From: Caecitellus pseudoparvulus
Taxonomy: Eukaryota; Protista; Bigyra: Bicosoecida
Reading direction: 5' to 3'
Assembly (NCBI GenBank): GCA_965644315.1
Contig: CBFFRQ010000023.1
Location: 1 to 58,771 of the forward strand
DNA length: 58,771 nt
A program made the translations under genes and the position numbers. Position 1 is the stretch's first letter; every line of letters starts with the position of its first letter. Below are positions 1 to 58,414 of the stretch, in pieces. The notes under the pieces were generated by a model. The model had not been told where the DNA came from and made no database searches. It worked only from the letters and a program-made list of their open reading frames with translations.

Positions 1-135
1 TACTTCCGAGGCAGGGCATGTGTCAAGGACATGCCCACCCCAAACCCCAGAAACGCAAAGAAGTGTCGCTTAGAAAGAGCTGCCTACGACGCAGCCGCAA
101 CTCCTGCCCCTTTCGGGGAAAGGAAGCGTTCTGCC

Positions 136-500
136 CCTACGACCTGTGGAGGGGCTTGGATGGTTTGAATGCATTTCTAACGAAACACACTCACCTGGGG
201 ACCACCGAGAGCGCCACGGGGGCCATGCGCTCGACACCGGTGTGTCGCATCCGCTGGCACCCCGTGCCCGAAGGCGTTCGGCGACCGGTGTCCCACCCAC
301 GCCTGTAAGAAGGGCAAGGAAAAAACTTTGTGTTGAACCCTTGCTGGAGGATAAAGAACTCAATGCTTCCGATGTCGTGAGCGAAGGAGAAGGAGATGGA
401 AGTGCACGCATACCGAGCTTGTGCAAAGCTCTCCCCCTCCCTCGCTCCGTTGCAGAACCTGCGTTTCCGGGCCCCCTGGGGGCCCGGACAACTAAAGTTG
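136..500 (+). repeat. Structured repeat module, copy A (two hairpin domains separated by an A-rich linker); candidate ncRNA or cis-element
   Basis: Near-identical to 3699-4076, and its 3' half matches 9232-9362. Long imperfect hairpin at ~198-293 (GGGAC..GTCCC, ACGGGG/CCCCGT, GACAC/GTGTC); hairpins gagcga..tcgctc, ccgggcccc/ggggcccgg and acaact/agttgt. Confidence 0.8.
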
Positions 501-859
501 TCCTGCCTTCCAAGTCTGCGGCAATCGCGATTGAAAGTGCTGCTCATCAACCCTTGCGATATCTTGGCCGGGACAAGAAGTTTCGATGTGCAGCTAGCGT
601 GCTCTGGGGCAGGCTGTACTTTGATGTCCGGATCAGCGACGCGTACTCTGCAGCTGGCTCAGTGCAACATCAGTTTACGCTTTATGAGCTGTACTTGCAG
701 CTCCTTGATACATACCAATGTAGCCACACTCGCCACTTCAAATTTGTTGTTGTACGCGCTCTCATGCACCCTACTGTGCTTTTGTGTCACACCGTGGCGA
801 GACGTGCCCCGCGTTTCGCCCGAGCTTCGAATGTCCGCGGCTAAAGCCAAGCCTTGTAC

Positions 860-1115
860 CGCAAGATGGGCTAGGCCATAACAGTGGTCTGCACGTCGCT
901 GGAATGTGTATCTTCCACTTTTCGTCGTGCCAGGCAAAGTTGTTGAGCGTGTCTTGCACACAGTAACGTGGACTTCTTTCGAAGGACCTTGCATTGGGCA
1001 CACTCTTCATCAATCTCTCAGGAATTGAAAGACTAAGGACTTACGAACAGAGTACCTGCAGGGAAGACAACTTGGCTCGCCAAACTCCGGTGCGCACAGC
1101 CTATGCTGCAGCCAC
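860..1115 (+). pseudogene. Degenerate ORF of the unidentified 'GPCIG' family, copy A
   Basis: Translates, with a frameshift, to QWSARRWNVYLP..VERVLHTVTWTSFEGPCIGHTL / CREDNLARQTPVRTAYAAA. This matches 16350-16720(-): QWSDRIWGFLVP..VERELHTVAHSPAGGPCIGHVL..CHADNRARQLQVWHAYQKA. Confidence 0.65.
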
Positions 1116-1129
1116 CCGGCGAGTGGAAA

Positions 1130-1680
1130 AGCCTGCCCTCGACGACGGGAGGTTTTGGGTCTAGTCTGAGGTTCGGCCAAACCGTTCGCTACTCCGAACT
1201 GCTTCGCTGGAAGCAGAGCTCAAGGTATACAGCACCCCTCAAGCCCGCAGTGCCAAAGATCGCGGACACTGTGCCTACACTTTGTTTGCGTTGGCAAGAA
1301 GCGCACTTGCCGCGCGTCGCTTGGGCCTGGACGCGGAGTGTCTCCCGCACGCTGCCCGGCGCGGCTGAGGTCAACGACCTCCCCACCGCCTGGGAGGTGG
1401 CGACTCTCTTCAGGCAGGGGCTCGCGGCGGCCGCAGTTCGAGACAGACTTCTGCCAGCGGCTCCTGTCTTGTTGGAATCAATGCTCGATTCCCAGGCGGC
1501 CGCTACGATGGTCGGGAAAGGATACTCGGTTCGGTCGGAACCGACAACCGAGATGTGCAGGACCTTGGCGCTCATCCAGGAGCGCCATCGGGTGCGCATC
1601 GTTCTGAGGTGGGTGAGGCGACGGTGGAATTGGCAGGCATGTCGCCTCTCACACCCCGAAACGGTGGAGTTGTCGTCCCT
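1130..1680 (+). mobile_element. DIRS/Ngaro-type RNase H fragment
   Basis: Motifs TAWEVATL, LDSQAAATMVGKGYS and VLRWVRRRWNWQACRLS match the RNase HI of YR retrotransposons (E; D-S-x-x-A..KGxS; WV-x-R-x-x-N-x-x-A-D-x-LS). The last Asp is replaced by Cys. Confidence 0.65.
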
Positions 1681-3489
1681 TTGGTCTCCTCCCACGGCGA
1701 GATCCGAACTAGCCGGGGAAGACTTCAAAAGCCATGGACCACGTGGGATCTGGAGGTGCCTCGAGCTGGATCAGGCGACGGGCGGGAGCAGCAGCAGGGG
1801 AGACCCCTCCCTGCTGTCGCACGGGATTCCACTGCACACTGAGGTGCTGTGCGCACAGTTGTATTGCATTCGACACGAAAGCCAAAGCACCTTTGGTTGT
1901 GGGGAATTGAAGCAGCAGTTTCATGCCCAGACGACGTGCCCCCTCAGAGTTACTGTCCACGGGTACAGAGCGATGAAGGTACAGAGATCTCACGGTGTTC
2001 TCTGCGAATGAGTGGCGCTGGGACAATGGGGGTGGTCAATGAAGACACCCATCCGCGATATCAACACTGAACAGTGGGAGTGCTCATCCACTGCCTCGCC
2101 TGGGCCTTCTCCACGGCCCCACGCTCCTCAGCAGAGCGGGGTCAACGTGCCTGTCTTGGACCACGGCCGTCCGACCCCCCCCCCCCCCCCACGGGCAACC
2201 TTTGTTCGTGGAGATCGAATGTCTTCATCGCCCCTTCCGAACCTTGAGCCACTACTCTTGGCTCTCAAGCGGGCAAAGGCAGCAATGTTCAATAGGGCCG
2301 CCGCCCCCTCATCTCAAGCAGCAGCATGTTCGTGTAATTCTACACAGGACGTCATGATGAAGTGGAGTTGCAGCGCTGTACGTGATGAGGTTGAGGATCA
2401 CTCATGCTGCGGAGTTTGAATTCACCAACGGCGCTCCGCTGTACCCGCAATTCTGTCACACGCTCAGGCGTGAGAGGTCCCAGAGAGAGTCTCTTCGTAG
2501 GAGCAGGGGAGGTTGATATCTCAAGTTCACTTGCAGACTCATCGTCTCCACTGCCAGCGGCAGCCGCTGTCCGAGTGTGGCCTTCAGCGAGCACAAAACA
2601 TGAGCTGATTTCACCCTCCTCACAAGAGGGCTTGAATTCACTCTTGACGGCAGTGTTGAACGCGGCGCTTATAGATGAGCCTGAAGGTTGCAATTTCTCA
2701 ACCGAATGCTCTGCACAATACAAAATGCATTTCGGATGTTTTCATCACGTCTTGTACGGATCTGACCGTTGTTGCTAATTGTTTGCATCCATCCATACTT
2801 CAACAGGCTTAGAGCCGCAGCCCACTTTTGAACCATGATAAACATGTCATCTTGTTGTGCGTGTGCTATAATGAACAAATTCAGTTCAAGGAGTGGTCTG
2901 GTGGGTGATGGGGGAAGCAATGAAGGTGAAAGTGAAGGAGAAGGGCGATGCTTTAAATCGTCTGACTTTCGCTCAATTATGGGGCTCAAGTTGGCACAGC
3001 TATCAGGTAATACAATCTACGTACACTATACACACTGATCTATCTGTCTTTGTGCTGATATTCGCATGCTGTGACGCGAACAGGGGCTCAACTGGAGCAA
3101 GGCGAAACTCCGGCAAAACGCCAGGGGCAAAAAGAGGCCGACAACCGCAAAAACAACGTATACTGCATGGTCCTTTCACCGAGAGCTGGACGACCCTCTG
3201 TTCAATCGCTGAGCTTGTCCGCGAGATGAGCACAGCGTTGCTAAAAGAGTGTGCGGACGAGATGCGAGACACAGTCCTTGCGAGGCGCATCCACGCACAT
3301 GCCCGGAGTGGCGTACCGCTTAGACAGCGGGCTGCCAAACGGAAACCCAGTCCTAAGCTTGCAGCCATAGGCTTAGGTCACCTTCTTAACTCTGAGGCTG
3401 AATGCTGCACGTACTTGGGGATGGGCAGCAAGGCCGCGCGGCACCTCATCGACGGGGTCATCCACAGCATTCAAGCTGACAAACTTGCA

Positions 3490-3645
3490 GACCCCAAGCT
3501 CCTTTCAGCAACTGTCACATACTCCCCGGAAGTTCGGATCGCTGCTTCCGTGATGCGGGTACGGGGGGTGCGTTCACGTGAGATAAGCTTGCTATTTAGA
3601 TGCTCCTCCCAATCCGTTCAACGCTGGACTGCCGATCTGCTACCT
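3490..3645 (+). mobile_element. Transposase-type helix-turn-helix fragment, truncated at a TIR
   Basis: YSPEVRIAASVMRVRGVRSREISLLFRCSSQSVQRW fits an IS630/Tc1-like HTH pattern; it lies within ORF 2893..3870. Confidence 0.5.
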
Positions 3646-3698
3646 TACAGTTACCCCGGTGTAGATTGTGCAGTCAAATTGAAATGTTGCATTCTGTT

Positions 3699-4076
3699 CC
3701 TACGACCTGTGGAGGGGCTGGACGATATGAATGCATTTCTCACGAAACACACTCACCTGGGGACCACCGAGAACGCCACGGGGGCCATGCGCTCGACACC
3801 GGTGTGTCGCATCCGCTGGCACCCCGTGCCCGAAGGCGTTCGGCGACCGGTGTCCCACCCACCCCTGTAAAAGGGAGACAAAAGAAGAAAAAAAATATCC
3901 GGGTATCGAACCCGTAGCTTGGCGATAAAGCACAGACTGCTTCCGATGCCGTGAGCGAGAGAGAAGGAGATGAAAGTGCACAGGCACTGAGCCTGTGCAC
4001 AGCTCTCCCCCTCCCTCGCTCCGTTGCAGAACCTGCGTTTCCGCCCCCCCCGGGGGCCCGGATAACTAAAGTTGTT
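3699..4076 (+). repeat. Structured repeat module, copy B
   Basis: Aligns with 136-500; perfect stems gaacgcc/ggcgttc and gtgcacaggc/gcctgtgcac. Confidence 0.8.
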
Positions 4077-4978
4077 GCCCGAGCTTGGTTGCGCAAATAA
4101 AGAGCGACGTTGCGCTCGGGAAGCCTTAGAAGCCCCTCTGTAAGTGCGACATCAAGTTCATGGCTCTGTGGCAAGGAGCATCTTGACACACCTGTTGCAC
4201 CAATGGCATCTAAAGCTTGCCATGGCAGATACAATCCCATATCCTGTGCCTTCGGTATGCACACCGTCCGTTTTGGCACTGCATCAGCCTCAGCCGCTGT
4301 CTGAGCCAAAGCAGGCAACGCAGAGTTCAGAAAATGTTGAAATGGAGAGGACGAGTTACTTGTCATTGACGGGGTAAGCGTTGTGTCCCCTCCTGGCGCG
4401 TTGACCTGCCGTAAAAGGAACTTGTGTGCAGCCTGCAAAAAGCGAAACGCCACGTCAAAGACCAACTGACTACACACGCGCGTCAGTCCATCCAAATACA
4501 TTCTACGTACCATAAACACAAGCCCCGCAATCACGTTAGCAGTATCCTTTGGTTTAAAGCTCACTGAAACGGCGGGGCGTGCGCATTTGGTGCGGCCTTC
4601 GAAGCAGCATGAAACGCCAACGGCGGACGAACTTTTGAAGCCAGGTGTGGCACAATTTCTGGGAACTGACGAGAAACGATGCAGTGGTAGCACGAGAGTA
4701 CACAAGTACACATAGTCGCGCTGGAAAATTATGACATTGACGTGAGCAAACCTGATGAATCGAGTATGTGCTGCGGAGGTCATTGAGCAAACTCAAATTG
4801 CTAACCGAAGCTGATAGACGTGTCCGTCAGACAAGATACATTTTTGCCAGACTATTGTTGGTGATGACCCTTTCAGTCACACACACCTAAGTACCCCGCG
4901 CGCTTTCAACAAAATGATCCCAGTCACCACACAATTTGGACCCCTTGCGAAATCAGGCTATGGTACGCACCCCCTGTA

Positions 4979-5757
4979 GTGCTGAACCACATACGCGCAC
5001 ACTACCCATGGTTGCGAGTTCTCTTTGTGGTGGCCAACTGTACGAGCTTCCTTCAAGTTTGCGACGTGTCCATAGACAAACCCTTCAAGGGGCTGTTGAC
5101 TGAGCTGTACACGCGCTGGCGTGCGAGGAGAGCCGCTGCGGCAGCCGCTACCGGCAGAGCAGAATCACCGTTGGGTATGAAAGAAGCCAAGGCAGCCATG
5201 GCCCGGTTTGTCTAAGCGGCCAACTCCGCCATCCACCCTGACGTGGTTCTAAATGGAGTGCGCCGCACTGGACTGGGCAGCATTTGGACCGAGGAGGGGG
5301 CCAGCCAAGCCATCGAGGATGCCCGCTGTCTGATTGAGGACGGCTCTTTGTGGTGGCCGATCTCGCCCAAAGACTCTGTTGTAAAACGAGGAGAAGTACC
5401 AGTTGAGGTGGTGGACCAGGCCGCCGCAGATGCCAAGGCGGCAAGTGTTGGGGGCAAGACGAGAGTGCGGGAGGGGAAAGCAACTGGGACAGCCACCCGC
5501 AAGTACAAGTGCAGCGTGTGCAAGTGCGCCGGGCACACCAAGCGCACTTGCACGGCCACGTATACACTTTCTGTGGAGCGCACACCAGGCACCGCCAAGG
5601 CCCCACGCGGCCTTCCAAGCCCGACTCTGACCCTTGGACGCCTCTGCCCCCCTGAACAATGATGGTGTATAAAGAATGCACAATGTATTTACAGACACCA
5701 TACGCACCTCCACTGCCCAATCTTACACCTGCACAAACTATAACCGGGTGTACTGTA
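4979..5757 (+). mobile_element. pogo/Tigger DDE_1 transposase 3' fragment with CCHC knuckle and right TIR
   Basis: LFVVANCTSFLQVCDVSIDKPFK is the DDE_1 third-Asp motif, followed by VLNGVRRTGL and CSVCKCAGHTKRTC. In-frame stop at 5213-5215. Ends ...ataaccgggtgtactg|TA, a pogo-type TIR. Confidence 0.75.
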
Positions 5758-5892
5758 TATGTCGACTTTCTCTAAAAGCAACTCAAAAAATTTCTCAAGT
5801 TGCTTTTTCCGTGCAGACTACTGGTACATACATTTTGATTGTGCAAGATTTCATTCTGACTGCACATTCTACACAAGGGTAACTGTAAGAAC

Positions 5893-6450
5893 ATGAGTGC
5901 TTGGGAGGACACGGAGCGTTGTGCCAAGGCTGAGGAGCTTCGAAACGGTGTGAATGGGGATGGCGCCACCCTCAGCGACGGTGCTGTGCGGGTCCTGGAG
6001 GCGCACCTGGCATCCAAGCCGGTTCGGCGGAATGCGGCCGCCAACGCAATTGTGCGCGCGCTGCGCTCAGTGACAGCCCAGACTGTGTTGAACGGCATTC
6101 GTGCTTCAGGGATGTCGCGTGTCTGGGACGCGGCTACGAGGCTGGAGCTGTGGAACTTGGCACACGAGAGAGATGCAAGCGGTGCACTGTGGAGCAAGCT
6201 GACACCGCGGGGCATGCCCTTGGCCGAAGGTGTCGCTGCCGAGGCAACACCAGCACTGGTAGCGAGCGAAGGTTCTGCTGCTGGTGCTGGCGGGGGAGAT
6301 GAGCATCAGCGTGGAAAGAAGCGCCCTCGGGAACAAGGCGCGAAACAGGCCAGGACATGCGGCTGGTGCAGGCACACGGGCCACGACAGGCACAACTGTC
6401 TCATTCACAAGCAGGGCCTGCCCGCCGCCAAGGGAGCGCGGTACAAGTGA
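5893..6450 (+). mobile_element. Second pogo-like transposase C-terminal fragment with CCHC knuckle
   Basis: TVLNGIRASGMSRVW..GALW aligns with VVLNGVRRTGLGSIW..GSLW; CGWCRHTGHDRHNC. Confidence 0.6.
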
Positions 6451-6999
6451 AGTGGCAGGAGCGCTTGCCCAGGTGCGCCTAAACCACAGAATGCATTGCA
6501 GCTGCCCCATGCTCACACTTGCGGCCTGCTGCCCAAAATCAATCAACAAGACGTACTATCAACAAACGTCCAGGTACGGAAGAGCTTGCAAGAAACGGAG
6601 ACCTTTTGAGCGTCTATGAAAATGGCTTCCACCTTCTGAAGAAGCTGAGTTGCGTGCACCCTTCGGTAAGGGTTGCCATCAGTGCTGGAGTCCCGCAGAA
6701 CACAAGTGGTCAACACAGCCCTGCGCCGCGTCAAGCTCGTGCTTGGGCCGGTCGCACATTCAGGCTGGCTGCGGTTCATGCGGTCCAAATGTGCTTCGAA
6801 CTCATCATGGCCCTTGATCCTAAGCTTCTCGGGGCGTTTGTGGAAGAGCCAGACACCCAGATCGACTCTTCCAGTGAAAGCACACCTTCTCATGATGAAG
6901 CCGAAGCGACAGACGTTCTGTTGGGGAAATCCGGCAGTAATCAACCATGTGACAGCCCTGTCGATGGCACTGCACTCTCTGGTGACGGGCCTGGCACAG

Positions 7000-7591
7000 T
7001 CTCGACACCCTCCCATTTCCCGGCCACATAATCCACAACGTCGTCCCCAAGTACAACAACGTTGGGTGGCCCATGGAGAACACACAACCCACAGGAGATG
7101 TGCTGTCCGACTTGTTGAAGGCCTTGAATACATCCATACTGGCATTGAAGAACCTCTGTGCACGTGCAGGGATGCTCATGAGCTGACGTCGTTACACAAC
7201 GAAACGCCACTTTGAAGCGTATTTCAAGCCTGAACTTGGTGCCCTTTGCAGCCTGCTGCCTTGCACACTCGTAGAACAAAGCCACTACTTGCGGGTTTTG
7301 GGCCTTGGTCCACGTCTTGCCGTCTAGTCCCAAAGCGCCGTCCTCTTGCATGGTTGCAACCACATTCAAAAGGCAGTCAGAAACTGTGGATGATCCCAAC
7401 GTAGGGGTCATGTCCCACAGCATTGGGAATGCATCTGCAGCGTACATCCCTATCAGAAACGCGCGCTGGGAGCGCTCAGTACCGGCGATGTCTACAACTG
7501 TAGATATGGCGCTTTCGGGCGTGGCAGGGGTGCTTCGCCTGCTTTGCCGTGTGGGCCGTACGCTTGCCATGGCTGCAGCACCTTGAAGCAA
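7000..7591 (-). pseudogene. Unknown-family ORF (PTLGSS family), frameshifted
   Basis: SQRAFL..PTLGSSTVSDCLLNVVATMQED..WT, then in another frame QRFFNASMDVFK; homologous to 7943-8500(+). Confidence 0.55.
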
Positions 7592-7942
7592 ACAATGCAG
7601 AGCAAAAATGATTGTCGCAACGTGTCTGCAAAATGCTGCTCAACTCATGCTTGAGAAGTGTAGGTGTAAGAAGACTGCTTAGTGCATTTCGGCGTGAGTG
7701 GTGTTTGTGGCGCGCGTTTCGAAGTGAAACACCCCCCCATGCCGGAAAGTCTTAGGCCTTCTGGCACAAGGGGGATTTACTGGGGCAAAGGACGAGGGGG
7801 TCCCACGGTTAGGGGTTTGATATCACGCGCTTATTTTTGTCAAGAATGCATTTCTGCCACTGTTGCACATAAAATGACTACAGTTCGCGCAATCGTTCGT
7901 TTTCTGCAAGCTCTCTCAGCGCATCCTGCAGCAAAGCAAGTC

Positions 7943-8500
7943 ATGAGACGCACTCGGAGAGGTGGAGCAGCCGCCACACCTCCCGCATCGGAGGCCTCCG
8001 AGGGCTCCCAGGTCGACAGCGTAGCGGTGTTGGAGTCTCAACGCCATTTCCTCAAGCAAGTCTTCACCCAACAGAATTTCTCTACGCTGTACAACCTCAA
8101 ACCAACCCTGGGCAGCAGCTCGCCGTCCGACGTGCTGCTGCCCGTTGTGGCCGGCATGCGAGAAGACAAAATGGTTCGCGCATCTGGCGCTTCCTGGACA
8201 CCAGATGAGGACGCGGAAGTTCTGAGTGAGTTCCTGTCCTAGGCGCGCTCTGGAACAGGAGAGGGTGACAAGTGACGCGTGGAGGTGAGAGACATTGCGA
8301 GCACTTTCCACTCAAGTTCCGCTCTCGGGGGCGAGCCTTCACTGCCCTTCCCTTTGTTCAGAGATTCTTCAAGGCATCTGTGGATGCGTACAAAGAGCAT
8401 CATTCCATGTCAGGTTTGGGTGGGGATCCACTCCCTGTTGGCATCACAGTCAGCCTCGCGCCCAATGAGGTGGTCCTGCGACGACAGGTGCAGGGTGAAC
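7943..8500 (+). pseudogene. Unknown-family ORF (PTLGSS family), interrupted
   Basis: SQRHFL..PTLGSSSPSDVLLPVVAGMRED..WT, stop at 8240-8242, then QRFFKASVDAYK. Confidence 0.55.
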
Positions 8501-9231
8501 CCCTTCTCGTAGCAGATGCACTATCCGAGGTCGAGCAACGCGCTGTGCAGGAGCGGACTGTCTGGCAAACAGGCACAAACTGCTCCGCGGACCTGTCGGG
8601 ACAGCTCGGCCCGACTCGTGGGAGAGAATTGTACCGGCGATGCAGTTGCTTTGAGCCCCACTCGTGGAGGGCCAGTTTTAGCCCTGCCACGCTTTCCCCC
8701 CTTCTGGTGGAACCGACACCACCAGTGCCAGCAGTACGGGTTTCAGTCCCACCACTGTGTCCATCAACCTCTGTCCACTCACCACCCAATAAGCCACCGC
8801 ATTCATCGATGGTAGCAATTTCTGGTGGATCTGTGGCGCGCTGGTTCGCTACGGGATTGACCCCTGAGTATGGAGTTGCGGAAATGGGCGCTCCTGACGA
8901 TAATTGCAGCGGACAGTAGTAGCAGCGCGTACCCTCCAGCGAAGCTTGCTGACTTGGCGAAATCGGAACCCGATATCCTACATGACTTGACAAAGTATGA
9001 AGCCAAAGAACGCCGACTTGCACAAATGGCAAACAGAGGATGGAAGACAGGAATTAGACGAAGGTATGCTGAAGTCATTGCCGGTGGTCACCAGTCAGCA
9101 AGAGTCGATGGTAGCGTGTGGGTGCAACCAGACACTCGAGCTTAGGTCAAGGCACCGTTGAGCGGAATTCCTGCTTTGGCTCCACAAAGGCCAAGAGGCC
9201 GAGCATACAATGAAAAGAACCAACATGTTTC

Positions 9232-9362
9232 CTGTGCCGTGAGCGAGGGAGAAGAAGACGAAAGTGCGCACAAGCCGAGCCTGCGCACAGCCCCCCCCCT
9301 CCCTCGCTCCGTTACAGAACCTACGTTTCCAGGTCCGCATGGGACCTGGAGAACTGAAGTTC
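9232..9362 (+). repeat. Structured repeat module, copy C (3' domain only)
   Basis: gtgagcgagggagaag..ctccctcgctccgttacagaacctacgtttcc matches copies A/B; stems show compensatory changes. Confidence 0.75.
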
Positions 9363-9669
9363 CGCTCTTGAGTTCGAGGGTATCGTGCATCGGCCATGGG
9401 TCTCTCTCACTGGCACTTGGCATCGTCTCTCAAGTTCCGCGAGGAACTCAGCCCTTCGAAAAAGGCTCTCAGTGCTCATGATGGCTTGTGCAGACTGCGG
9501 AATTCCGGCAGAAAAGGTTCATGCCAATCACCGGCTTGTAGAACAAGCACAGTCCCTCCTTCTCAACATTTTAGGAGGCGTGATCACAATCACCGTCGAC
9601 TAGACAACACCGACAACACACGTGTCGTACACAGTCTGCCAGCCAGATCTTTACATCAGATGATGAACG

Positions 9670-10020
9670 CAGTGGAACTGCATGGCTCTGCAGGTGAACG
9701 TCGCCCTCTTGGACGCCCCGAGCGCGCCATGGGGTGACAGGACATGGACTGTTCTCGACCTCCATGCACGGCCTGCCCTTGCAGCAGAGAAAGAGGAAGG
9801 GGGAGGGCAGCTGGTCATGCTGCCCGCAGCATCAGATGGCGGACCGTGCATTGGTGCAGTGCAGCTTTGCGATCCATTTGGAAAGTCATCCCGTACTTCA
9901 AGACACTTCAGACAGTACAATGACTGTGTCTCTCGAGCGATCAGAAGGAAGTACTCCGAGATGGTATCCGCAGGAACTGAATGTGCTGAGTCCGATGGCA
10001 GTATGTAGATTGCGAACACT
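9670..10020 (+). pseudogene. 'GPCIG' family ORF, copy C
   Basis: PWGDRTW..DGGPCIGAVQL..IRRKYSEMVSAG..DGSM. The same C-terminal motif occurs at 8990-9140 (IRRRYAEVIAGG..DGSVWV). Confidence 0.6.
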
Positions 10021-10626
10021 GTCAGGGGTTCGGTGTTAGCGGGCACAACTAGCCCAGAGGTCTTTCGCTGCAAAGTACGAACTCGGGCGACTGAGCAGGT
10101 ACATCAGTTTGCGTTCCTCAAAGAAGCACCAGGACCGTTTGGCCCAGCAGCTGTCCAGTACCTACATACGTTGACTCCCATAGGATCTCCGGTACAGATA
10201 AGGAAGACCACATACCAGATGAAAGCTACCAGAAGATCTTCTGTCCGTGAAGCAGCTCCTCGTCATCGTCTATCGTCAGGAGCTAGGCAAGGAGCTTCTC
10301 TTCCCGCCAATCAAGTCGCAAGCGCCAAAAAAGCTGAGGCTTTACAACATTTTCACGGCGACTTCTAGGGAGTATCCTTTCATCATTGCCCCGTGTGCAG
10401 TGAGTGTAGACCATGCTGGAACACTATCGTGTCTGGAGGAGAAGAATGCCGAACATAAGAATGCCCGGTCACTCCCTTCCGAAATGTTTGACAAAAAGCC
10501 CACAGTGCATTTTCTTGCCTCACCAGGCTACAAGCTGGTCCACGCGCGGCACGCTTCACACTTGAGCGCGCTTCAGGGTGGGGGGCAGAGCCTGCAGCTT
10601 TTTCTGGGCGCCGTACGGCAGTGTGC

Positions 10627-11165
10627 CTAGGCTTCCGGCAATACCCACACACGTACTTTCGGAGTGGTGATAATAATCACGCCGGACTTGGCAGGGTTGA
10701 TGGATAGCCCCACCCGGGCTCCCACAGCTTTGACTTCCTGGAGCATGAGGTGGAGGGCAGTGGCAGATGTGGCAAGGCAGGCAAGGTCATCAGCATAGAG
10801 GGTGTGGCTGACGATGCCTGCTGGGGTTGGAATACCCACGCCAGGGATTCGTTCGTAAGCCATTTCACCTAGCCTGTGTGACAAGACATCCACGGCAATC
10901 TTGAACAGAGGCGGGGAAAGAGTTCCACCCTGTGGGACCCCATTTGTGATAGGTAGGGGCCTGCACAGACCGTGTTTAGTGTTGATGGAGACAGAGGCGC
11001 GGCTCATGTACTCCTTCACGAGAGTCAGGAGCGGGGTTGGCAGCCGGGCAGCCTCGAGGATCCCAGCCACAGCTCCGTGTGAGACCGAGTCGAAGGCACC
11101 CTTGAAGTCAACGAAGAGGACAAGGGCGTGGGAGGGTGAGCTGCGAGACCTGATGTATCCGTAGA
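10627..11165 (-). mobile_element. Non-LTR retrotransposon reverse transcriptase fragment
   Basis: LFVDFKGAFDSVSH, GVPQGGTLSPPLF, LYADDL and GLSINPAKS are canonical LINE RT motifs (domains 3-6). Confidence 0.92.
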
Positions 11166-11950: not shown

Positions 11951-12680
11951 GGATGGTGGGCCCGCTGCGGGCAAGTAAGGTTATTGAGTGGGCCCGACAC
12001 CAAGTGACGACGGGAGCTTGCTCGTCGTGGTCGGCTGGCGACAAGCTCAAGGCCCTGCTGGCCGCCGTGAACTCATGGTGCATCCCCGTCGAGAGCCTGA
12101 GCAGGGTGGGCATGACGCTCACGAAGGCGCTGGCCAGGATGAAACCGAGCCCACCGGTGCAGCACCGTGAACACGTGCCCATGAGCAAGCTTCGTAAGAC
12201 GGTGGACGCTCTGGGCGGACGCCCCAAGCTATAAGCCTGCCTGCTGATTGGATTCTGGGCCATGATGCGCGCTGGTGAGCTGCTACACCTGGAATGGGCC
12301 GACATCACCTTTACAAGACGCGACGGCGTATGGGTGGTGACGGGCAGGCATGGGGACAAGACGCATCACCACCAGGACAGGCAATGATCCGTCCCCAGTT
12401 CCCCAGAGAGGGCGCGCGCGTTCGATCACCTCCTGGCGGAGGCAGTCCGAGGAAAAGGCCGCGTGCTCTCGACCCAGGACGGGGCGGACATAACCGCAGC
12501 GTTGAAGGCGCACACCGGGGTCGGCCTCGGAGGCCTGCGGTCAGGCTGCCACAGGTTCTGGGTCCAGCAAGGGCTCCCAGCAGCGGCCATCCACCAACAG
12601 GGAGGGTGGGCCCCGACCTCGAACGTTCCCAGCCTCTACTACTGGGGGCGGTCCGGGGTAGGGTACAGTCTGCTGCGGGA
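11950..12680 (+). pseudogene. Tyrosine recombinase of a DIRS/Ngaro- or Crypton-type element, disabled
   Basis: Read through stops at 12232 and 12385: GFWAMMRAGELLHLEWADI (catalytic R), GDKT (K), GGLRSG (HxxR-like), QQGGW, SLYY (Y). Confidence 0.8.
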
Positions 12681-13308
12681 CGCCATGCGGGGCAATAGGC
12701 GGCCCAGTCAGGACTCGGGTCGCAGCGAGGCTTCCTCACGGACAGGGGGCACAACAAAGTGGGGGGGTACTCAGAGGACCGGGTCCCTGAGCTCCACCCC
12801 TCCGTCCGGCACCGCACGGCCAAGGAGAGGAGAGGATTGCCCTCCCCGGCGTCGACCGATGGCCAACACCGGTCAGTGGCCCCCCTGGGGGGGGGGGAGG
12901 GGGGGCAAGATGCAAGGGTAAACGATGTGAGATGTACGCCTTAACACCTTGGGGCCACCTGGTATGGGAACCCGCCGACTGCAGCACGCCGGTGCGGAGC
13001 GCGGGGTCACTGTGGTGTCGGGCGATCTGGCAAGGATGCATTGACAACAATGCATTCTAATACCACACCACCCGCTCGAGCGTTCAGAAGAACTTCCCTG
13101 TGCCGGAAATTCTTACATTTCGTTCCAAGCATTCTCTTGCAAGTCGCACACCAGCACCTCTCGCCCTCCCTCTGCCGCCTCGAGTTGCATAGAGAGTGCC
13201 GAGTACTGGTATCCGTCCTGGGAGGACGCTCAGGGCGAGTGCCTCACCCTGCACGAGGTGAGGCGCCGCCAGAGCGAACGCTTCGCTGCGGTCTAGGACT
13301 TTTCTTCC

Positions 13309-32529: not shown

Positions 32530-33734
32530 ATGCACCGCCTGCGCACGGCGGCAGCTTGGCGGCGAGGCATGGCCTCCGCAGCCCGCCTGCCCCTGAACCT
32601 GAGCGAGGTCGGGCTGAAAGTGCTGCAGGCGCCAGCAGTGGAGGACAAGATGCGCTGGACGCTGGAGGCGTGGGACGAGCTGGAGCAGCAGGGCACTCTT
32701 GGCCCCTGGCCGCCCACGGAGCATTTGGATGCAGAGCAGGCCGCCTCCCTGCGCAGCATCCCAGACACGGACCTGCCGGGGCTCCCCACCAATGCCGTGC
32801 GGTCCTTGCTCCCAGCATCCGGGTCCTGGGCACCAACCATTTGCAGGGCGTCCCTGCCGGGACACGCTGCAGTGCCCGATCACCCAGCACGGCCCAGCAA
32901 GCCCGAGCTCGTGTCTGGTGCGGAAATTGCCGCCTGCGCGAGACGCCGCCGACCTCGCTGCACCCCCACCCGTGCCTCCTGCAGGCAAGAAGTTCCGCAG
33001 GCCAAAGGTGGCTGCGAACGTGTACCTCCTGCACGCCCTGGCACACGTGGAGTTGAACGCGTGTGGTGCGTGGGGGGCGCCAGTATCGCGGTAGTGGACC
33101 GCCCCTCGCACAAGCGTTGCTGTCATGCGCCGCCTGCACAGATCTGTACTGGGACACCATCGTGCGCTTCTACGATGACGACGTGCCCACGCAGCTCTTC
33201 GTGGACCTGCTGGACATCGCCCGGGACGAGGCCAAACACTTTTCCTGGCTGCAGCAACGCCTGGTCGCACTGGGCAGCGGCTACGGCGCCCTGCCTGCGC
33301 ACAAGGCCCTGTGGGAGCAGGGCCACAGCTCTCGAGGCAGCCTCCTGGCGCGCCTCGCCGTCGTGCCTCTCGTGCAGGAGGCCAAGGCGCTGGATGCCGC
33401 CGACCGACTGAGAGGGCGCATGGTGGGTGCGGGGGATGGGCCCAGTGCGGAGCTCGTGGCGCAGATTTGCGCCGAGGAGGTGGGGCACGTGTACAAGGGC
33501 ATGCAGTGGTTCATTCACCTGTGTCTGGAGCAGGGAGTCCACCCGCCCACCGCCTTCCACGCCCAGGTGGCGCGGCACTGCCCCTCGCCGCTGCCCGGCC
33601 CCTTCAATGAAACCGCCCGCGCTATGGCGGGTATGTGGCCAGAGTGGTTCCGCCCCGTGTCTCGCGGCGGCATGTCGCGGCGGGCCTGGCTCACCATGAA
33701 ACATCATCAAGCGGGAGCGGGTACTCCCCATTGA
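32530..33734 (+). CDS. DUF455 ferritin-like di-iron protein
   Basis: PDHPARP, LLHALAHVELNA, DLYWD, DEAKHF, YGALPAH, PLVQEAKALDA, EEVGHV..WF, GPFNETARAMAG; multiple introns. Confidence 0.88.
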
Positions 33735-41687: not shown

Positions 41688-44663
41688 ATGGCTGAGCCGC
41701 CCAGCGGCGAGGGTAGCCCGGGAAAAGGCCTCGCAGAGTTTGCCATTCACGATGGCTACTTTCAGCTGGGGTCCAAGCAGCTGGAGGCAGAGTACAACAA
41801 GGCCTACATCGTGGACGCCTGCACGCAGCTGTCAGACGCCGAGCCGCGCCTGCGTGCGTCCAACGCGCCCCCCAATGCGCCAGTGGTGCTGGTTGTGTCT
41901 GCGACAGACAGACATGCCTTTGACAAACACCGCTCGCACATGTTTGACTCGGCCAGCAACGCCCGCGCAGCCTGGCAGGCCGCCCTGGACGCGGTGAGCC
42001 AAGTGCACTGCAGGACAGGCAAACGATTTCCGCTGGACACAGACTGCCCCCGCCCTCCCCCTCGCTGCACAGTGGCGGCCCGGCACACCCGTGCCTCAAC
42101 GCATCGCGCAACTTGCCTCCTCTTCCCCCGTCCCTCCTGCGCTGCGGTCCCAGCTGTGGTCGCAGGCCCTGGGTGAGTGACCTGGCGCTGCCTCGAGCGT
42201 TGAAAGCGAGTTACTCCACTCGCCCCGCGCCTCGCCTGCCGCACAGGCAACCCCAGCCACATGACCTCCAAGGCCTATGAAGCCTGTCTGCAGCGCGCCG
42301 TCTTCTCCATGGACCTGGCCGGCCTCGTCAAGGCGGCCGCCGCTCCCCGTGACCGCCCCTCGCCACCCCCCCCCGCCGCGGCGGCCTCTCCCCCCCACGA
42401 CGACGACGACGTGGGGCTACTGACGCCCATCCGCATGCGGGGTGGCGTGGCGGAGGCCATGTCTCTGCCCTCCACACCCTCCTCCTTCTCGTCCACCCCC
42501 ACCCTGCCCTTCCTCAACCGCCTGAACCAGGCTGCCAGCGGGGCCCCCACAGTGCCTGCGGCAGGGGGGGTGGACGCCACCCCCGACAGGGGGGGTGAAG
42601 GGGGGTCCCGCCCCGCCCCCCCGGCTCTGCCTTCCTCCCCAGCGGGGCGCATGACTCAGGTGGCGGGAACCCCCCTCACGGGCGGCGCGAGGGGGGGTGC
42701 CTCGCCCCCCGGCTCCACCCCCCTCCTCGCCCGCATGGCTCGTATGGACACCGTGGTGGGCGGCTCCAGCCTCATGGCTAAGGCGGGCGGGCACCCCCTG
42801 CCGTATTTCGCTGGGGAAGCCACCGTGGAGTGCATCGGCCGCGACCTCAGCCGCACCTTCCCCCACCTGGCGTTCTTCGCAGGGGCCGACGCCGCCGAGC
42901 GACAGCAGCTCGCCAACATCCTCATGGCCTTCTGCTTCTTCCGACCTGACATCGGGTACACGCAGGGCATGTCCTACCTCACCGCAGTGCTGCTCCTGAC
43001 GCTGTCGCCGCCGGGACAGCAGGGGTCGGCGTTCCAGGCGGCACGTCGCAGGCGCCGACGCAAGGCCGGGCACGCCCTCGTGCAGGCCCGGCGGAGGGAG
43101 TACCTGGGCGAGGGGGGTGAGGGGGGGGGTACGCCCCCCCGCCCCACCACCTCGGGCGGCACCACGCCATCCCCCCGCACGACCCCCGCCCCCACCCCCC
43201 TCCTGCGGGGATGGGGGCGGCGGGGGAGGAGGGCGCAGGGGGTGGTGGGCCCACCCCCTCCGCCCCTCGCCCCATGCCCAGTCCCTTCGAGGGTGGGCCC
43301 ACCCCCTCTGCGTCCCCCTCCCCCCGCCGCGCCCCCATGCCCAGCGCCCTGCTCCGGTACGGAGGGGGGGGGGGCGTCTCCCCCCAAGGCACCTTGGCAC
43401 GACGCAGCACAGATCCAGCCCCTGTGGAGCCGGCCGCCACGCCGCCCCACGGCCTCCGCCCCCGCACAGGCAGTGCGGCGTCCCTCGTCTCCGTGGCCAT
43501 GTCGGAGGGGGGGGGGACCCCGGCCCGGGGAGGGGGGGGGTCCCACCCCTCCTTGGCTTCCCTCGGCTGGGAGGGGGTGCCGCCGGCCTGACCCCCCTCC
43601 TCCCTGCCAGTGGGCGCCTGGGCTGCCAACGCCCAAGGGGGTGCAGGGGGTCGCGCCGCTGGACCTGGGCCCACCCCCTGCCCCAGACGGAGGCCCCCCC
43701 GCCCCCCCCTGCCAGCCGTGTGCGCACCCCCATTCACCGAGTCCCCCATCTGGCCTCCGGCATGGCCAGTGGGCGTATTACGGCGGGAGGGGGGGGCGGA
43801 CCCCCCCCTCCCGCCGAACGTCAGCACAGCCCCACCCTGGAGGTGCTACTGCGGGGGGGCGAGCGCGCCCTGCCCGCAGGTGGCGCCACCCATGGGCGGG
43901 CGGGTGACTCCGCCTCCCCCCACGCCCCCTCCCCTCCCCCTCCTCCTCCAGCAGCCTGGCAGCCCTGGCCACAGGGGGGCATGCGTACCTGCGGGGGGGG
44001 GGCGGCGGCACCTCCCCCGCCTCCACCGCCAGCGCCACCTCCGCACCCCCCGAGGTGCAGGGGCGGGGGGTGCCCCAGGTCGGAGGGGGGGGCGGCGACA
44101 TCCCCCCCCTGCACCGCCCCTCCGCCGCCTCCTCCGCTGCCTCCGGCCCCGCGGGGGATGGCTGGACGCTGGAGTCCCGCGTCTTCCGGTGCTTCTCGGC
44201 ACTCGTGGCGTCGCCGCCCGTGCGGCACTTCTTCGCCCTGGACCTGGCCGTCATGGAGGCCTGGTTCGACGCCTTCTACTCCGCCCTGCGCCGGCACTCC
44301 CCCACCGCCGCCGACGCCCTGCCACGGGACGAACTGCCCCCCCACGCATACCTCACCAAGTGGCTCATGACGCTCTTTGCACAGCCGCTGGCGGGGCAGT
44401 TGGAGGTCGTGGTGGTGATCTGGGATCGCGTGTTGCTGCTGGGGCCCGTGGAGATACTCCGCTGCGCCGTCGCCCTCGCCACCACCCTGGCCCCCCTCCT
44501 CGCCCACCTGAACCCCGTCAACCAACAAGCCCTCCTCGCACGGGTGCCGGAAGGCCTCAAGCTGTACGAGGAGGCCTTCTTGCGACAGGTGCGGTCTGTG
44601 CGCCTCACGCCGGGCGAGGCGGCGGCGGCGGATGTGGGGGTGGCCCTGGAGCCCACGGCCTGA
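41688..44663 (+). CDS. TBC (RabGAP) protein, TBC1D12/14-like, with a possible PH-like N-terminus; frame broken in the G/C-homopolymer region
   Basis: IGRDLSRTFP and RPDIGYTQGMSYL (42830-42980); YLTKWLMTLF..IWDRVLL (44350-44440). The intervening region changes frame. Confidence 0.75.
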
Positions 44664-57400: not shown

Positions 57401-58414
57401 ATCATGCTTCAGCGCCACCCGGTGTGGCCGCTGCGCCATCCGAGGCAGCCCCAGACCGACCCGGACGCCTTCAGCACGCTTCAGCCTCGCCACACTCCCC
57501 CTCAACACACCCACACCAACACCCAACACGGACGCCCACTCTTCAACGTCCGCAGCGACAGTGCCAGGGTCAGGGACGATGTGACTCTCCACAATGCTCA
57601 CACTTGCCGTGGCGCTGTTCTTGCACACCACGCCCTCCGCCACATCAACACCTGACACAGACACCAGCCTCCGACTCGCGATCCCATCACCACACCCCAA
57701 CAGCCCCCGCAGCTCCTCCACCGCAGTCGCCGCTGACTCCAAGTGCGCCGCTGCTGCCTCGCTCGTCAGCTCGCCTGCTGCGCCACCACGCAGCCACTCC
57801 GCCTGCTGATGCATGAACGCCAGTGCATCTGCCATGGCATCATTGCCGCCGCCACTGCCCTCCACACCGGCACCACCCACCGCTGCATCCGCAACAGGCA
57901 CCTCCCGCTCACCCCACCATCGCGTCAAGTCCGCCAGCGCACCCTCCGCACTCACCCCACGCCGCACACTGCCCCACGCACCCACAACATCACCCCACAC
58001 CGCATCCCCGCTCGGCACGGCATCCACGCCCACACCAGACACCGCCTGACGCAGCACGCCCATCGCAGCGAAGCACCGGAACGACAAGTACTCCAGCGCG
58101 TCACACACCTCCCCTCGATCAATCTGCCCTGCCAACACCCCAGCCCGCTCCAACAATGCACCTCCTGCATCACGCAGCAGCTCACCCAGCTCCGCCAGGC
58201 TCATGTCCTGGGCGTCTCCACCTGCACCAGGTGCTTCTCCTCGACCAATGGCCGCCAGCCCTCGCAGTGCTGCGCCATGCTTCCACTCGCTCCCGGCCAT
58301 GCACTTCAACTTCTCCAAGCACTTCGCCACCATCTCCACCTTCGCCCTGTCAAGCCCACCGCCCACCTCGATGTCCACCTCCCCACAGTCAACACTGCTC
58401 GATGCCTGCGCCAC
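54422..58414 (-). CDS. Pseudokinase-like plus ankyrin-repeat protein, copy 1 (21 repeats of 34 or 38 aa)
   Basis: 1330-codon open frame; tandem xxFxxACxxGHxxVVRELLAL(S/T)GxRxVDVH units at ~54422-56690. Confidence 0.88.
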   Translation of the reverse strand: MAQASSSVDCGEVDIEVGGGLDRAKVEMVAKCLEKLKCMAGSEWKHGAALRGLAAIGRGEAPGAGGDAQDMSLAELGELLRDAGGALLERAGVLAGQIDRGEVCDALEYLSFRCFAAMGVLRQAVSGVGVDAVPSGDAVWGDVVGAWGSVRRGVSAEGALADLTRWWGEREVPVADAAVGGAGVEGSGGGNDAMADALAFMHQQAEWLRGGAAGELTSEAAAAHLESAATAVEELRGLLGCGDGIASRRLVSVSGVDVAEGVVCKNSATASVSIVESHIVPDPGTVAADVEEWASVLGVGVGVLRGSVARLKRAEGVRVGLGLPRMAQRPHRVALKHDCSQVRADEPVGERSTIAVQVQCELGWPLSTFLDDEAWCDVGLDVKQRVAVRVLGACAVAEACGVEVGDVGVGSFVVVGVGSGSVGDLVEALDGGGCEVLLSACAGVWRGGGQEGAGVGGGSAGVSGVVRSVLGVGGGAGAGAGGAGQVFVGSGEVGGGQALARALEAVEGGERRCMGAYVMACEDSGVLVEGLQDVGRAIGAWLKERQSRAAEQKEQGAGQRLSGEAVRFDEEMTAVFHIACMDGDVDVVRELLALTGDNAVDVHAGVGNEPEASFRFACEHGHVEVVRELLALTGHREVDVHAGPPGDPERAFQGACQEGHLDVVRELLALSGHRAVDVHADRECGFRLACQKGHLDVVRELLALSGAREVDVHAGPPGDPERAFQTACQNGHLDVVRELLALSGHRAVDVHADRECGFRAACQNGHVEVVRELLALSGHREVDIHVRREGGFVAACQNGRVEVVRELLALTGAREVDVHIRREGGFIAACQKGHLEVVRELLALSGHREVDVHAGPPGDPERGFQGACQEGHLDVVRELLALSGAREVDVHADRECGFRAACQNGHLDVVRELLALTGAREVDVHVRREGGFVAACQNGRVEVVRELLALTGAREVDVHAGPPGDPERGFQAACQNGHVDVVRELLALSGHREVDVHADGECGFRLACANGHAGVVRELLGLTGAREVDVHVDREGGFRVACQEGHIEVVRELLGLTGYRAIDVHVGREAAFRAACQKGQLKMVRELLALSGHRAVDVHAGRPGDPGRALQLACVNGHVDVVRELLALSGAREVDVHVDGECCFIAACQKGHLDVVRELLALSGHREVDVHAGPPGDPERAFQAACQNGHLDVVRELLALSGAREVDVHADRECGFRVACQNGHVEVVRELLALSGAREVDVHAGPPGDPERGFQTACQEGHVEVVRELLALTGHRAVDVHVDREYGFRAACIKDHAGVVRELLALSGNRRIPDSIRQRATKFDGLNDLI

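Follow-up and report, generated by a model that had tools for sequence, protein, structure and literature searches.

A hairpin module in a contig of Caecitellus pseudoparvulus is very likely the solo terminal repeat of an Ngaro-type retrotransposon

A module able to fold into hairpins occurs three times towards the left end of contig CBFFRQ010000023.1 of Caecitellus pseudoparvulus, the 58,771-nt stretch of DNA analyzed here and called the window. An earlier note, made from the sequence alone, had described it as a structured RNA of the plus strand, coupled to an orphan open reading frame (ORF) a fixed distance downstream and spreading with it as one unit. What, then, is this module, and do the reading frames beside it belong to it? 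The results presented below indicate, with a probability that we put at about 0.88, that the module is the terminal A-B repeat unit of an Ngaro-type (DIRS-order) tyrosine-recombinase retrotransposon, read on the minus strand, and that it is a relic unlinked to the adjacent reading frames. All statements about this A-B unit refer to the minus strand of the window.

The module and its counterpart in a complete Ngaro element

Comparison of the window with itself showed that 118-501 and 3681-4075 are direct repeats 86% identical to each other, and that 9214-9361 is a third direct repeat, 79% identical to these two and representing the plus-strand 3' half only. The three loci reported in the earlier note were confirmed in this way and are designated copies A, B and C (Table 1). 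In copy A the profile of the module family aligned over 501-129, and the unit starts with ACTTTAG and ends with GCAGAA. Copy C shares 79% identity with the A repeats of the two other copies and scored 137 bits with a covariance model that had been built from the plus-strand 3' half of the module. BLAST of the 30.6-Mb genome returned the three window copies and three more on contig C212, and no others. The copies on C212 do not count as independent, because this contig duplicates the window region, or is another haplotype of it, at 95-98% identity and with large insertions and deletions. A genome-wide search with the covariance model recovered the same six copies together with one distant match on C45, to an A repeat (33.5 bits), and a later profile search added one diverged copy on C50. 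Because only these loci exist in the genome, the element is not widely dispersed, contrary to what had been supposed.

The distant match on C45 lies at the exact terminus of a 5.98-kb element, present in three copies which are 99-100% identical and likely active. Its repeats, located by self-comparison, give the layout A1-[ORFs]-B1A2B2. A full Ngaro element consists of A1, a gag-like ORF, a reverse transcriptase ORF, a recombinase ORF, and then B1, A2 and B2. It is this layout of split direct repeats that defines Ngaro elements within the DIRS order (PMC8547959, PMC7192593). The coding content of the C45 element was also examined. ORF2 (713 aa) matched the Pfam family RVT_1 at E 9e-14. ORF3 (327 aa) is conserved across Ngaro types (33% identity, E 7e-26), matched the Pfam family Phage_integrase weakly (E 0.16), and gave no match in a sequence-profile search against the solved structures of the PDB. 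When its AlphaFold model was compared with the PDB, the 26 best structural matches were all topoisomerases IB or tyrosine recombinases (Z 5.6-10.9, residues ~66-230). ORF3 is accordingly predicted from the model to have a tyrosine-recombinase fold and not that of a DDE integrase.

The module-family profile (minus strand, nhmmer) was then run against this element and produced one collinear alignment through A2, the linker and B2 (E 2.2e-12); it also matched B2 alone (2.4e-11) and B1 (1.3e-7), in the sense orientation every time. Since the collinear homology covers A2, linker and B2, the module was identified as an Ngaro A-B unit. On this alignment the plus-strand "3' half" is the A repeat and the "5' half" the B repeat. 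The repeats are of nearly the same length in the module and in the C45 element (B, 171 and 172 nt; A, ~166 and 169 nt), and the two families share the end CAGAA and a start of the form C-T...GTTG-CC. In the C45 element the pyrimidine tract stands directly before the ATG of ORF1. The idea of a mobile unit whose hairpins are kept by compensatory change holds good, but the unit is an Ngaro repeat and not an unidentified element. The earlier note had itself held that a match to the untranslated region or terminal repeat of a known transposon family would refute it, and such a match was found, since the module matches the terminal repeat of a known family.

The ends of the module are true element ends, because module-free copies of the unrelated flanks begin exactly there elsewhere, and because contigs of other public runs covering 1-6000 break exactly at 3692 and 4072/4073 and then enter different flanks. 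The runs containing this region are all DNA runs, from organisms or marine metagenomes. No target-site duplication was seen at the three sites. The 5' flanks finish in AA (ACAA, ACAA and GGAA) and the unit finishes in CAGAA, which fits, at three sites only, the trinucleotide rule formulated for the circle-junction oligonucleotide at insertion ends (PMC7192593). Upstream of A there is no B repeat in copies A and B, and between A and B there are no ORFs; beyond copy C, the minus-strand sequence matched neither a B repeat nor Ngaro ORFs, and only weak hits (E ~0.01) were obtained.

C22, C215, C56 and C80 carry four more Ngaro copies, which represent at least one other type. They have the split-repeat layout of the C45 type and show ~35% amino-acid identity to it in ORF2; the C22 type matches RVT_1 (E 1.7e-7). 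Their A-B units, though unrelated in sequence, are built in the same order: A opens with a GC hairpin and continues with a long hairpin, a pyrimidine tract marks the A/B border, and B has a long GC-rich hairpin, with AATGCATT near the end. At the C45-type B|A junction, CAGCAG-AA-CTGCTG forms a perfect 6+6 palindrome around AA, possibly the core site of the recombinase. In copy C the palindrome is 5+5; since the C22-type junction is not palindromic, we do not claim the palindrome as general.

Table 1. Positions of the solo units, of the reference Ngaro element and of neighboring features. Positions without a contig name are those of the window.
Feature	Position	Strand	Remarks
Copy A, solo A-B unit	129-498	-	A repeat ~498 to 336; pyrimidine tract ~335 to 300; B repeat 299 to 129
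Copy B, solo A-B unit	3692-4072	-	B repeat 3692-3861; pyrimidine tract ~3862-3905; A repeat ~3906-4072
Copy C, A repeat alone	9226-9360	-	3' (lower-coordinate) side cut off
C212 counterparts of the copies	C212:4648-5048, 33297-33690, 57638-57762		
C45-type Ngaro	C45:39342-45317; C177:17902-23878; C34:143802-149781		99-100% identical copies; long ORFs intact
Repeats of the C45 element	A1 1-169; B1 5461-5632; A2 5625-5793; B2 5812-5983 (sense coordinates)		From self-comparison
Ngaro-like pol ORF fragment	1316-1720	+	Opposite to the solo units; 59% aa identity to residues 526-660 of C45 ORF2, E 1.9e-40
3' fragment of C45-type Ngaro (recombinase ORF and B repeat)	11958-13094	+	89% nt identity to C45 sense 4487-5628; 12928-13093 additionally matches B2
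Left terminal inverted repeat of pogo-like element, other flank of copy B	3646-3691	+	Partner 5842-5889; 48-nt inverted repeat, 88% complementary, TA-flanked
Right flank of copy B, right-hand 900 bp of PIF/Harbinger transposon	4073-4972		92% identical to C116:13001-13900 and C92:127127-128026
Flank of copy C, repeat fragment of GIY-YIG gene family	9359-10424	+	80% identical to C180:20103-21167; one gap column in 1066 nt

Hairpins, folding strand and proposed mechanism

The stem changes listed in the earlier note are real in a six-sequence alignment (CCGGGCC/GGCCCGG against CCAGGTCC/GGACCTGG, GTGCACA against GTGCGCA), and at three pairs both sides are changed between copies A/B and copy C. The third "stem" of that note (ACAACT/AGTTGT against GAACT/AGTTC) does not belong purely to the module, however: it spans the element end, and about three of its bases come from the flank. 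Folding of the plus strand had been deduced from a change of A-U to G-U. This change is private to window copy A and absent from its C212 duplicate, and it is the minus strand that folds better. First, compared with shuffled sequences, the z value is -4.5 on the plus strand and -7.2 on the minus strand. Secondly, the long stem has A.C mismatches at seven positions when read on the plus strand, and at these the minus strand has G.U or standard pairs. Thirdly, the consensus energy is -63.7 on the minus strand against -48.7 on the plus strand. The better-folding strand of the module family is the sense strand of the element.

Covariation was followed over four lineages, namely copies A and B, the C45 type and the C50 copy. 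The 70 consensus pairs are 89% paired, and both sides have changed in 20 of them, against a mean of 10.4 and a maximum of 16 in 500 column shuffles and 3-9 when the partners were slid by 1-3 columns; the contrast is somewhat inflated, because the structure was derived from those same sequences. Judging by the alignments and the common order of features, the hairpins are conserved in Ngaro A and B repeats. A reading frame had been thought to be kept without indels in the module, which suggested dual coding; in the related Ngaro family that stretch has gaps of 2 and 14 columns, so the frame is not preserved. The failure to match a ribozyme or other known RNA consensus was borne out by Rfam 15, whose families (hammerhead, hepatitis delta virus-like and other ribozymes included) gave no match in the whole window at gathering thresholds. 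Around the copies at E<=10, only generic microRNA-precursor matches to the minus-strand hairpin appeared, at no more than 25 bits against thresholds of 53-105.

The following history would account for the three copies. Copies A and B most likely arose by recombination between A1 and A2 of a full element with loss of the interior, as in the formation of solo long terminal repeats (LTRs), an origin already proposed for the isolated AB repeats of Cafeteria (PMC8547959). Copy C would be an A repeat left after the loss of everything downstream. The compensatory differences would have been inherited from diverging active source elements and not have evolved in place. In the active element, to judge from position and from the DIRS-1 literature (PMC7192593), A would serve as the leader and B as the 3' end, and the internal B1-A2 junction would permit reconstruction of the ends before a circular copy is integrated by the recombinase. 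Within the unit, A carries the GC hairpin and a hairpin of ~28 bp ahead of the pyrimidine tract, and B the long GC-rich hairpin with the AATGCATT motif near its 3' end. These hairpins may act in cis on the sense RNA or complementary DNA (cDNA) of the element itself, as candidate signals for priming, strand transfer or packaging.

Several points weigh against the identification of the module as an Ngaro A-B unit. A full-length element with this A-B sequence was not found in the genome assembly by BLAST or covariance model, nor did three other sequencing runs point to one; the parent is therefore deduced from a sister family whose nucleotide similarity is ~70%. Of 8411 candidates, the covariance-model search of the genome scored 150, and diverged copies may for that reason be missed. 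RNase H was not among the Pfam matches (E<=0.01) for ORF2, RVT_1 being the sole family listed and Pfam the only scan of the C-terminal part of this ORF. The ORF3 model is of low confidence, with a mean predicted local distance difference test score of 51, and 64-87 over most of the matched region. Finally, the sense-strand folding advantage is clear in the module family and absent in the other Ngaro types, so that the folding species may be either RNA or cDNA.

Alternative readings and the flanking transposon patchwork

Might the A-B unit be a mobile element in its own right, that is, an ORF-less, non-autonomous miniature Ngaro moved in trans by the reverse transcriptase and recombinase of autonomous Ngaros? 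We consider this unlikely. The lack of a full-length parent in the genome would agree with it, but solo units are the expected decay product of such elements and have already been reported for Ngaro (PMC8547959), and 800 bp away from copy A there is a pol fragment derived from a sister family. The A end is joined to at least three different flanks, no B|A junction occurs among the listed contig ends of the three other sequencing runs, and copies A and B stand in different transposon contexts, all of which would suit independent movement; yet the divergence of the copies, 14-21%, gives no hint of recent activity in this genome. Summed over contigs, run X9 covers copy B at about 5-6 times the depth of the sequence around it, but such sums are not copy numbers.

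Far less probable still is the reading of the earlier note, in which a plus-strand ribozyme or gene for a structured RNA would be tied to an orphan protein family ~490 nt downstream and spread with it. The compensatory changes in the hairpins can be cited for it, and so can the peptide motifs, since EGPCIG at 981 and GGPCIG at 9838 do exist, 480 nt beyond the end of copy A and 476 nt beyond that of copy C, respectively. The similarity of the two is nonetheless a chance match: 5 of 30 shuffles produced a match of 14/18 nucleotides no more than 25 nt to either side of that offset. GGPCIG stands in the true coding frame of the copy C flank and is conserved in the related sequence on C180; this frame is genuinely constrained, with substitutions at codon positions 1, 2 and 3 numbering 18/8/33 between flank and C180. 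It is, however, part of a repeat of the GIY-YIG gene family, the C180 ORF that crosses the junction having a GIY-YIG domain (E 7e-11), and the C180-like flank begins at 9359/9360, exactly at the module end. The flank of copy B, similarly, is a Harbinger fragment whose similarity to C116 and C92 starts exactly at 4073, the sequence upstream being different there; the degenerate motif at ~4575 lies in this fragment, antisense to the second Harbinger ORF. The flank of copy A is unknown sequence. Among the three right-hand flanks no mutual similarity was detected by tblastx or sensitive blastn, by global alignment (z 1.3-1.6), or by Smith-Waterman comparison with the real frame of flank C (z 1.5), and Pfam searches on 10 ORFs in and around the modules and 10 flank ORFs gave nothing for the module ORFs.

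Because the flanks are unrelated and an EGPCIG/GGPCIG-like match arises in 5 of 30 shuffles, the module cannot be said to keep a fixed distance from an orphan ORF. The supposed coupling to a downstream ORF family fails, since two of the unrelated flanks have module-free copies elsewhere that start exactly at the module end. Together with the better folding of the minus strand, the lack of an Rfam match and the homology to the Ngaro A-B unit, this leaves little room for a plus-strand RNA gene. The adjacent reading frames belong to other elements, and the window copies are dead relics among fragments of other transposons.

A solo LTR, a short interspersed nuclear element (SINE) or a Helitron 3' end (hairpin plus CTRR) can hardly be meant, even though the size of ~380 nt, the internal A-rich tract, the single end kept by copy C (readable on the plus strand as a 5' truncation), the GC hairpin ~10 nt before CTAA/CTGA near the plus-strand end and the chromovirus integrase in the C212 insertion each recall one of them, for there are no TG...CA ends, no target-site duplication was seen at the three sites, no tRNA, 7SL or 5S head was matched, CTRR beside a host T is not at the end of every copy, and the Ngaro homology explains the whole length and both ends. 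The SINE and Helitron-end readings, and that of the tail of a long interspersed nuclear element, were dropped after the minus-strand Ngaro homology had been found. Two further assignments were rejected. If the module were part of the pogo element whose terminal inverted repeat adjoins copy B, the pogo terminus should not continue differently in the other arm and in the C50 copy, as it does. As for the module being the right end of a Harbinger element, Harbinger genes lie upstream of copy A on C212, but no matching inverted repeat was found, and the C116 and C92 copies run through the junction.

The surroundings of the solo units are themselves a patchwork. The first 13 kb of the window, made up of transposon fragments, have 54-58% G+C, compared with 65-75% further in. 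Ngaro debris occurs here in two other places (Table 1), and the pol fragment, on the strand opposite to the solo units, possibly comes from the same lost family as the module. A weak A-repeat match to the covariance model at 43778-43855 on the minus strand (29.9 bits), in a stretch of 76% G+C, is probably a GC-rich hairpin merely. On C50 (165283-165646 and 165748-166013), the diverged A-B unit lies ~100 bp from a 168-bp tandem repeat, and a better-preserved A-B unit in contigs of other strains (runs X1, X3 and X9) is flanked by a near-identical version of that repeat.

Around copy B, a TA-flanked pair of pogo-like terminal inverted repeats (3646-5889) brackets a Harbinger stretch of 900 bp and the solo A-B unit, together with what is left of a pogo transposase, its 3' third including a CCHC knuckle; the C-terminal pogo ORF at 5243-5662 matches a DDE_1 transposase on C13. 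This composite is not a simple insertion, because the related "empty" sequence on C181 stops continuing on the right side. The Harbinger copies at C116:10028-13900 and C92:127127-131000 are 3.87 kb long and 99.9% identical, encode a 676-aa DDE_Tnp_4 transposase with a helix-turn-helix, have ORFs on the other strand, and look recently active. At copy C, the Ngaro A fragment abuts the GIY-YIG-family repeat inside the GIY-YIG domain (window 9359 onward; C180:20103-21345). The copies of this gene family in the window and on C180 both have stop codons, yet their differences keep the coding pattern.

At 1035-1039 of the window, C212 (5567/27717) has an insertion of ~22 kb with a 5-bp overlap, since both pieces contain 1035-1039. 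Examination of the insert covered its first 4.4 kb, in which an integrase bearing a chromodomain is encoded, and contigs of run X1 show matching insertion ends; it looks like a polymorphic chromovirus (Ty3/gypsy) insertion. A reverse transcriptase fragment at 10627-11125 on the minus strand has ~30 relatives at ~70% identity. The four relatives examined (C32:1-10000, C154:1-10000, C151 and C42) lie at contig ends, three of them beside short tandem repeats, and on C32 two reverse transcriptase elements follow each other in tandem at a distance of 7.6 kb. They are possibly retroelements associated with telomeres. The family was considered as an Ngaro candidate (10673-11125) and set aside as irrelevant, its ~7.6-kb elements having no split direct repeats.

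Significance and comparison with known systems

The chief value of the analysis is a correction: what appeared to be a structured RNA plus an orphan ORF is, on the reading preferred here, a solo retrotransposon repeat read on the wrong strand. Relics of this kind are known. What is new is an Ngaro family seen here only as solo units, and probably extinct, and a hairpin architecture common to Ngaro A-B units. A and B repeats of unrelated sequence have one order of hairpins, pyrimidine tract and AATGCATT, and their stems covary; this common architecture points to specific candidates for the signals that DIRS-order elements use in priming and recombination. For no element of this order, to our knowledge, have the minimal signals been defined that reverse transcription and recombinase integration need in cis. 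Should the unlikely miniature Ngaro prove real after all, the hairpins, the pyrimidine tract and AATGCATT would be those minimal signals.

The nearest parallel is provided by the solo AB repeats of Cafeteria burkhardae (Hackl et al. 2021, eLife, PMC8547959), which likewise consist of A followed by B without ORFs. The intact Ngaro relatives there are also ~6 kb long and GC-rich with the layout A1-[ORFs]-B1A2B2, and the host is again a marine protist with a high-GC genome of ~30 Mb. The difference is that the A-B sequence of the window is without a full-length parent in the assembly and may represent a further, extinct type. Secondary structure in the Cafeteria AB repeats is not discussed in PMC8547959; the hairpins are described here.

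DIRS-1 of Dictyostelium belongs to the same order of tyrosine-recombinase retrotransposons, and in it an internal copy of the joined ends allows the termini to be rebuilt (PMC7192593). Its 3' hairpin has been proposed as a primer of reverse transcription, and a short circle-junction oligonucleotide recurs at both insertion ends (PMC7192593). DIRS-1 has inverted terminal repeats and an internal complementary region instead of split direct repeats; the comparison made here is one of layout. The solo LTRs of LTR retrotransposons and endogenous retroviruses resemble the A-B units in being relics of recombination between terminal repeats, with the interior lost, and in carrying the promoter, leader and 3' signals of the element. 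Unlike them, the A-B units are made of two parts, lack TG...CA ends and showed no target-site duplication at the three sites, and their parent integrates by a tyrosine recombinase.

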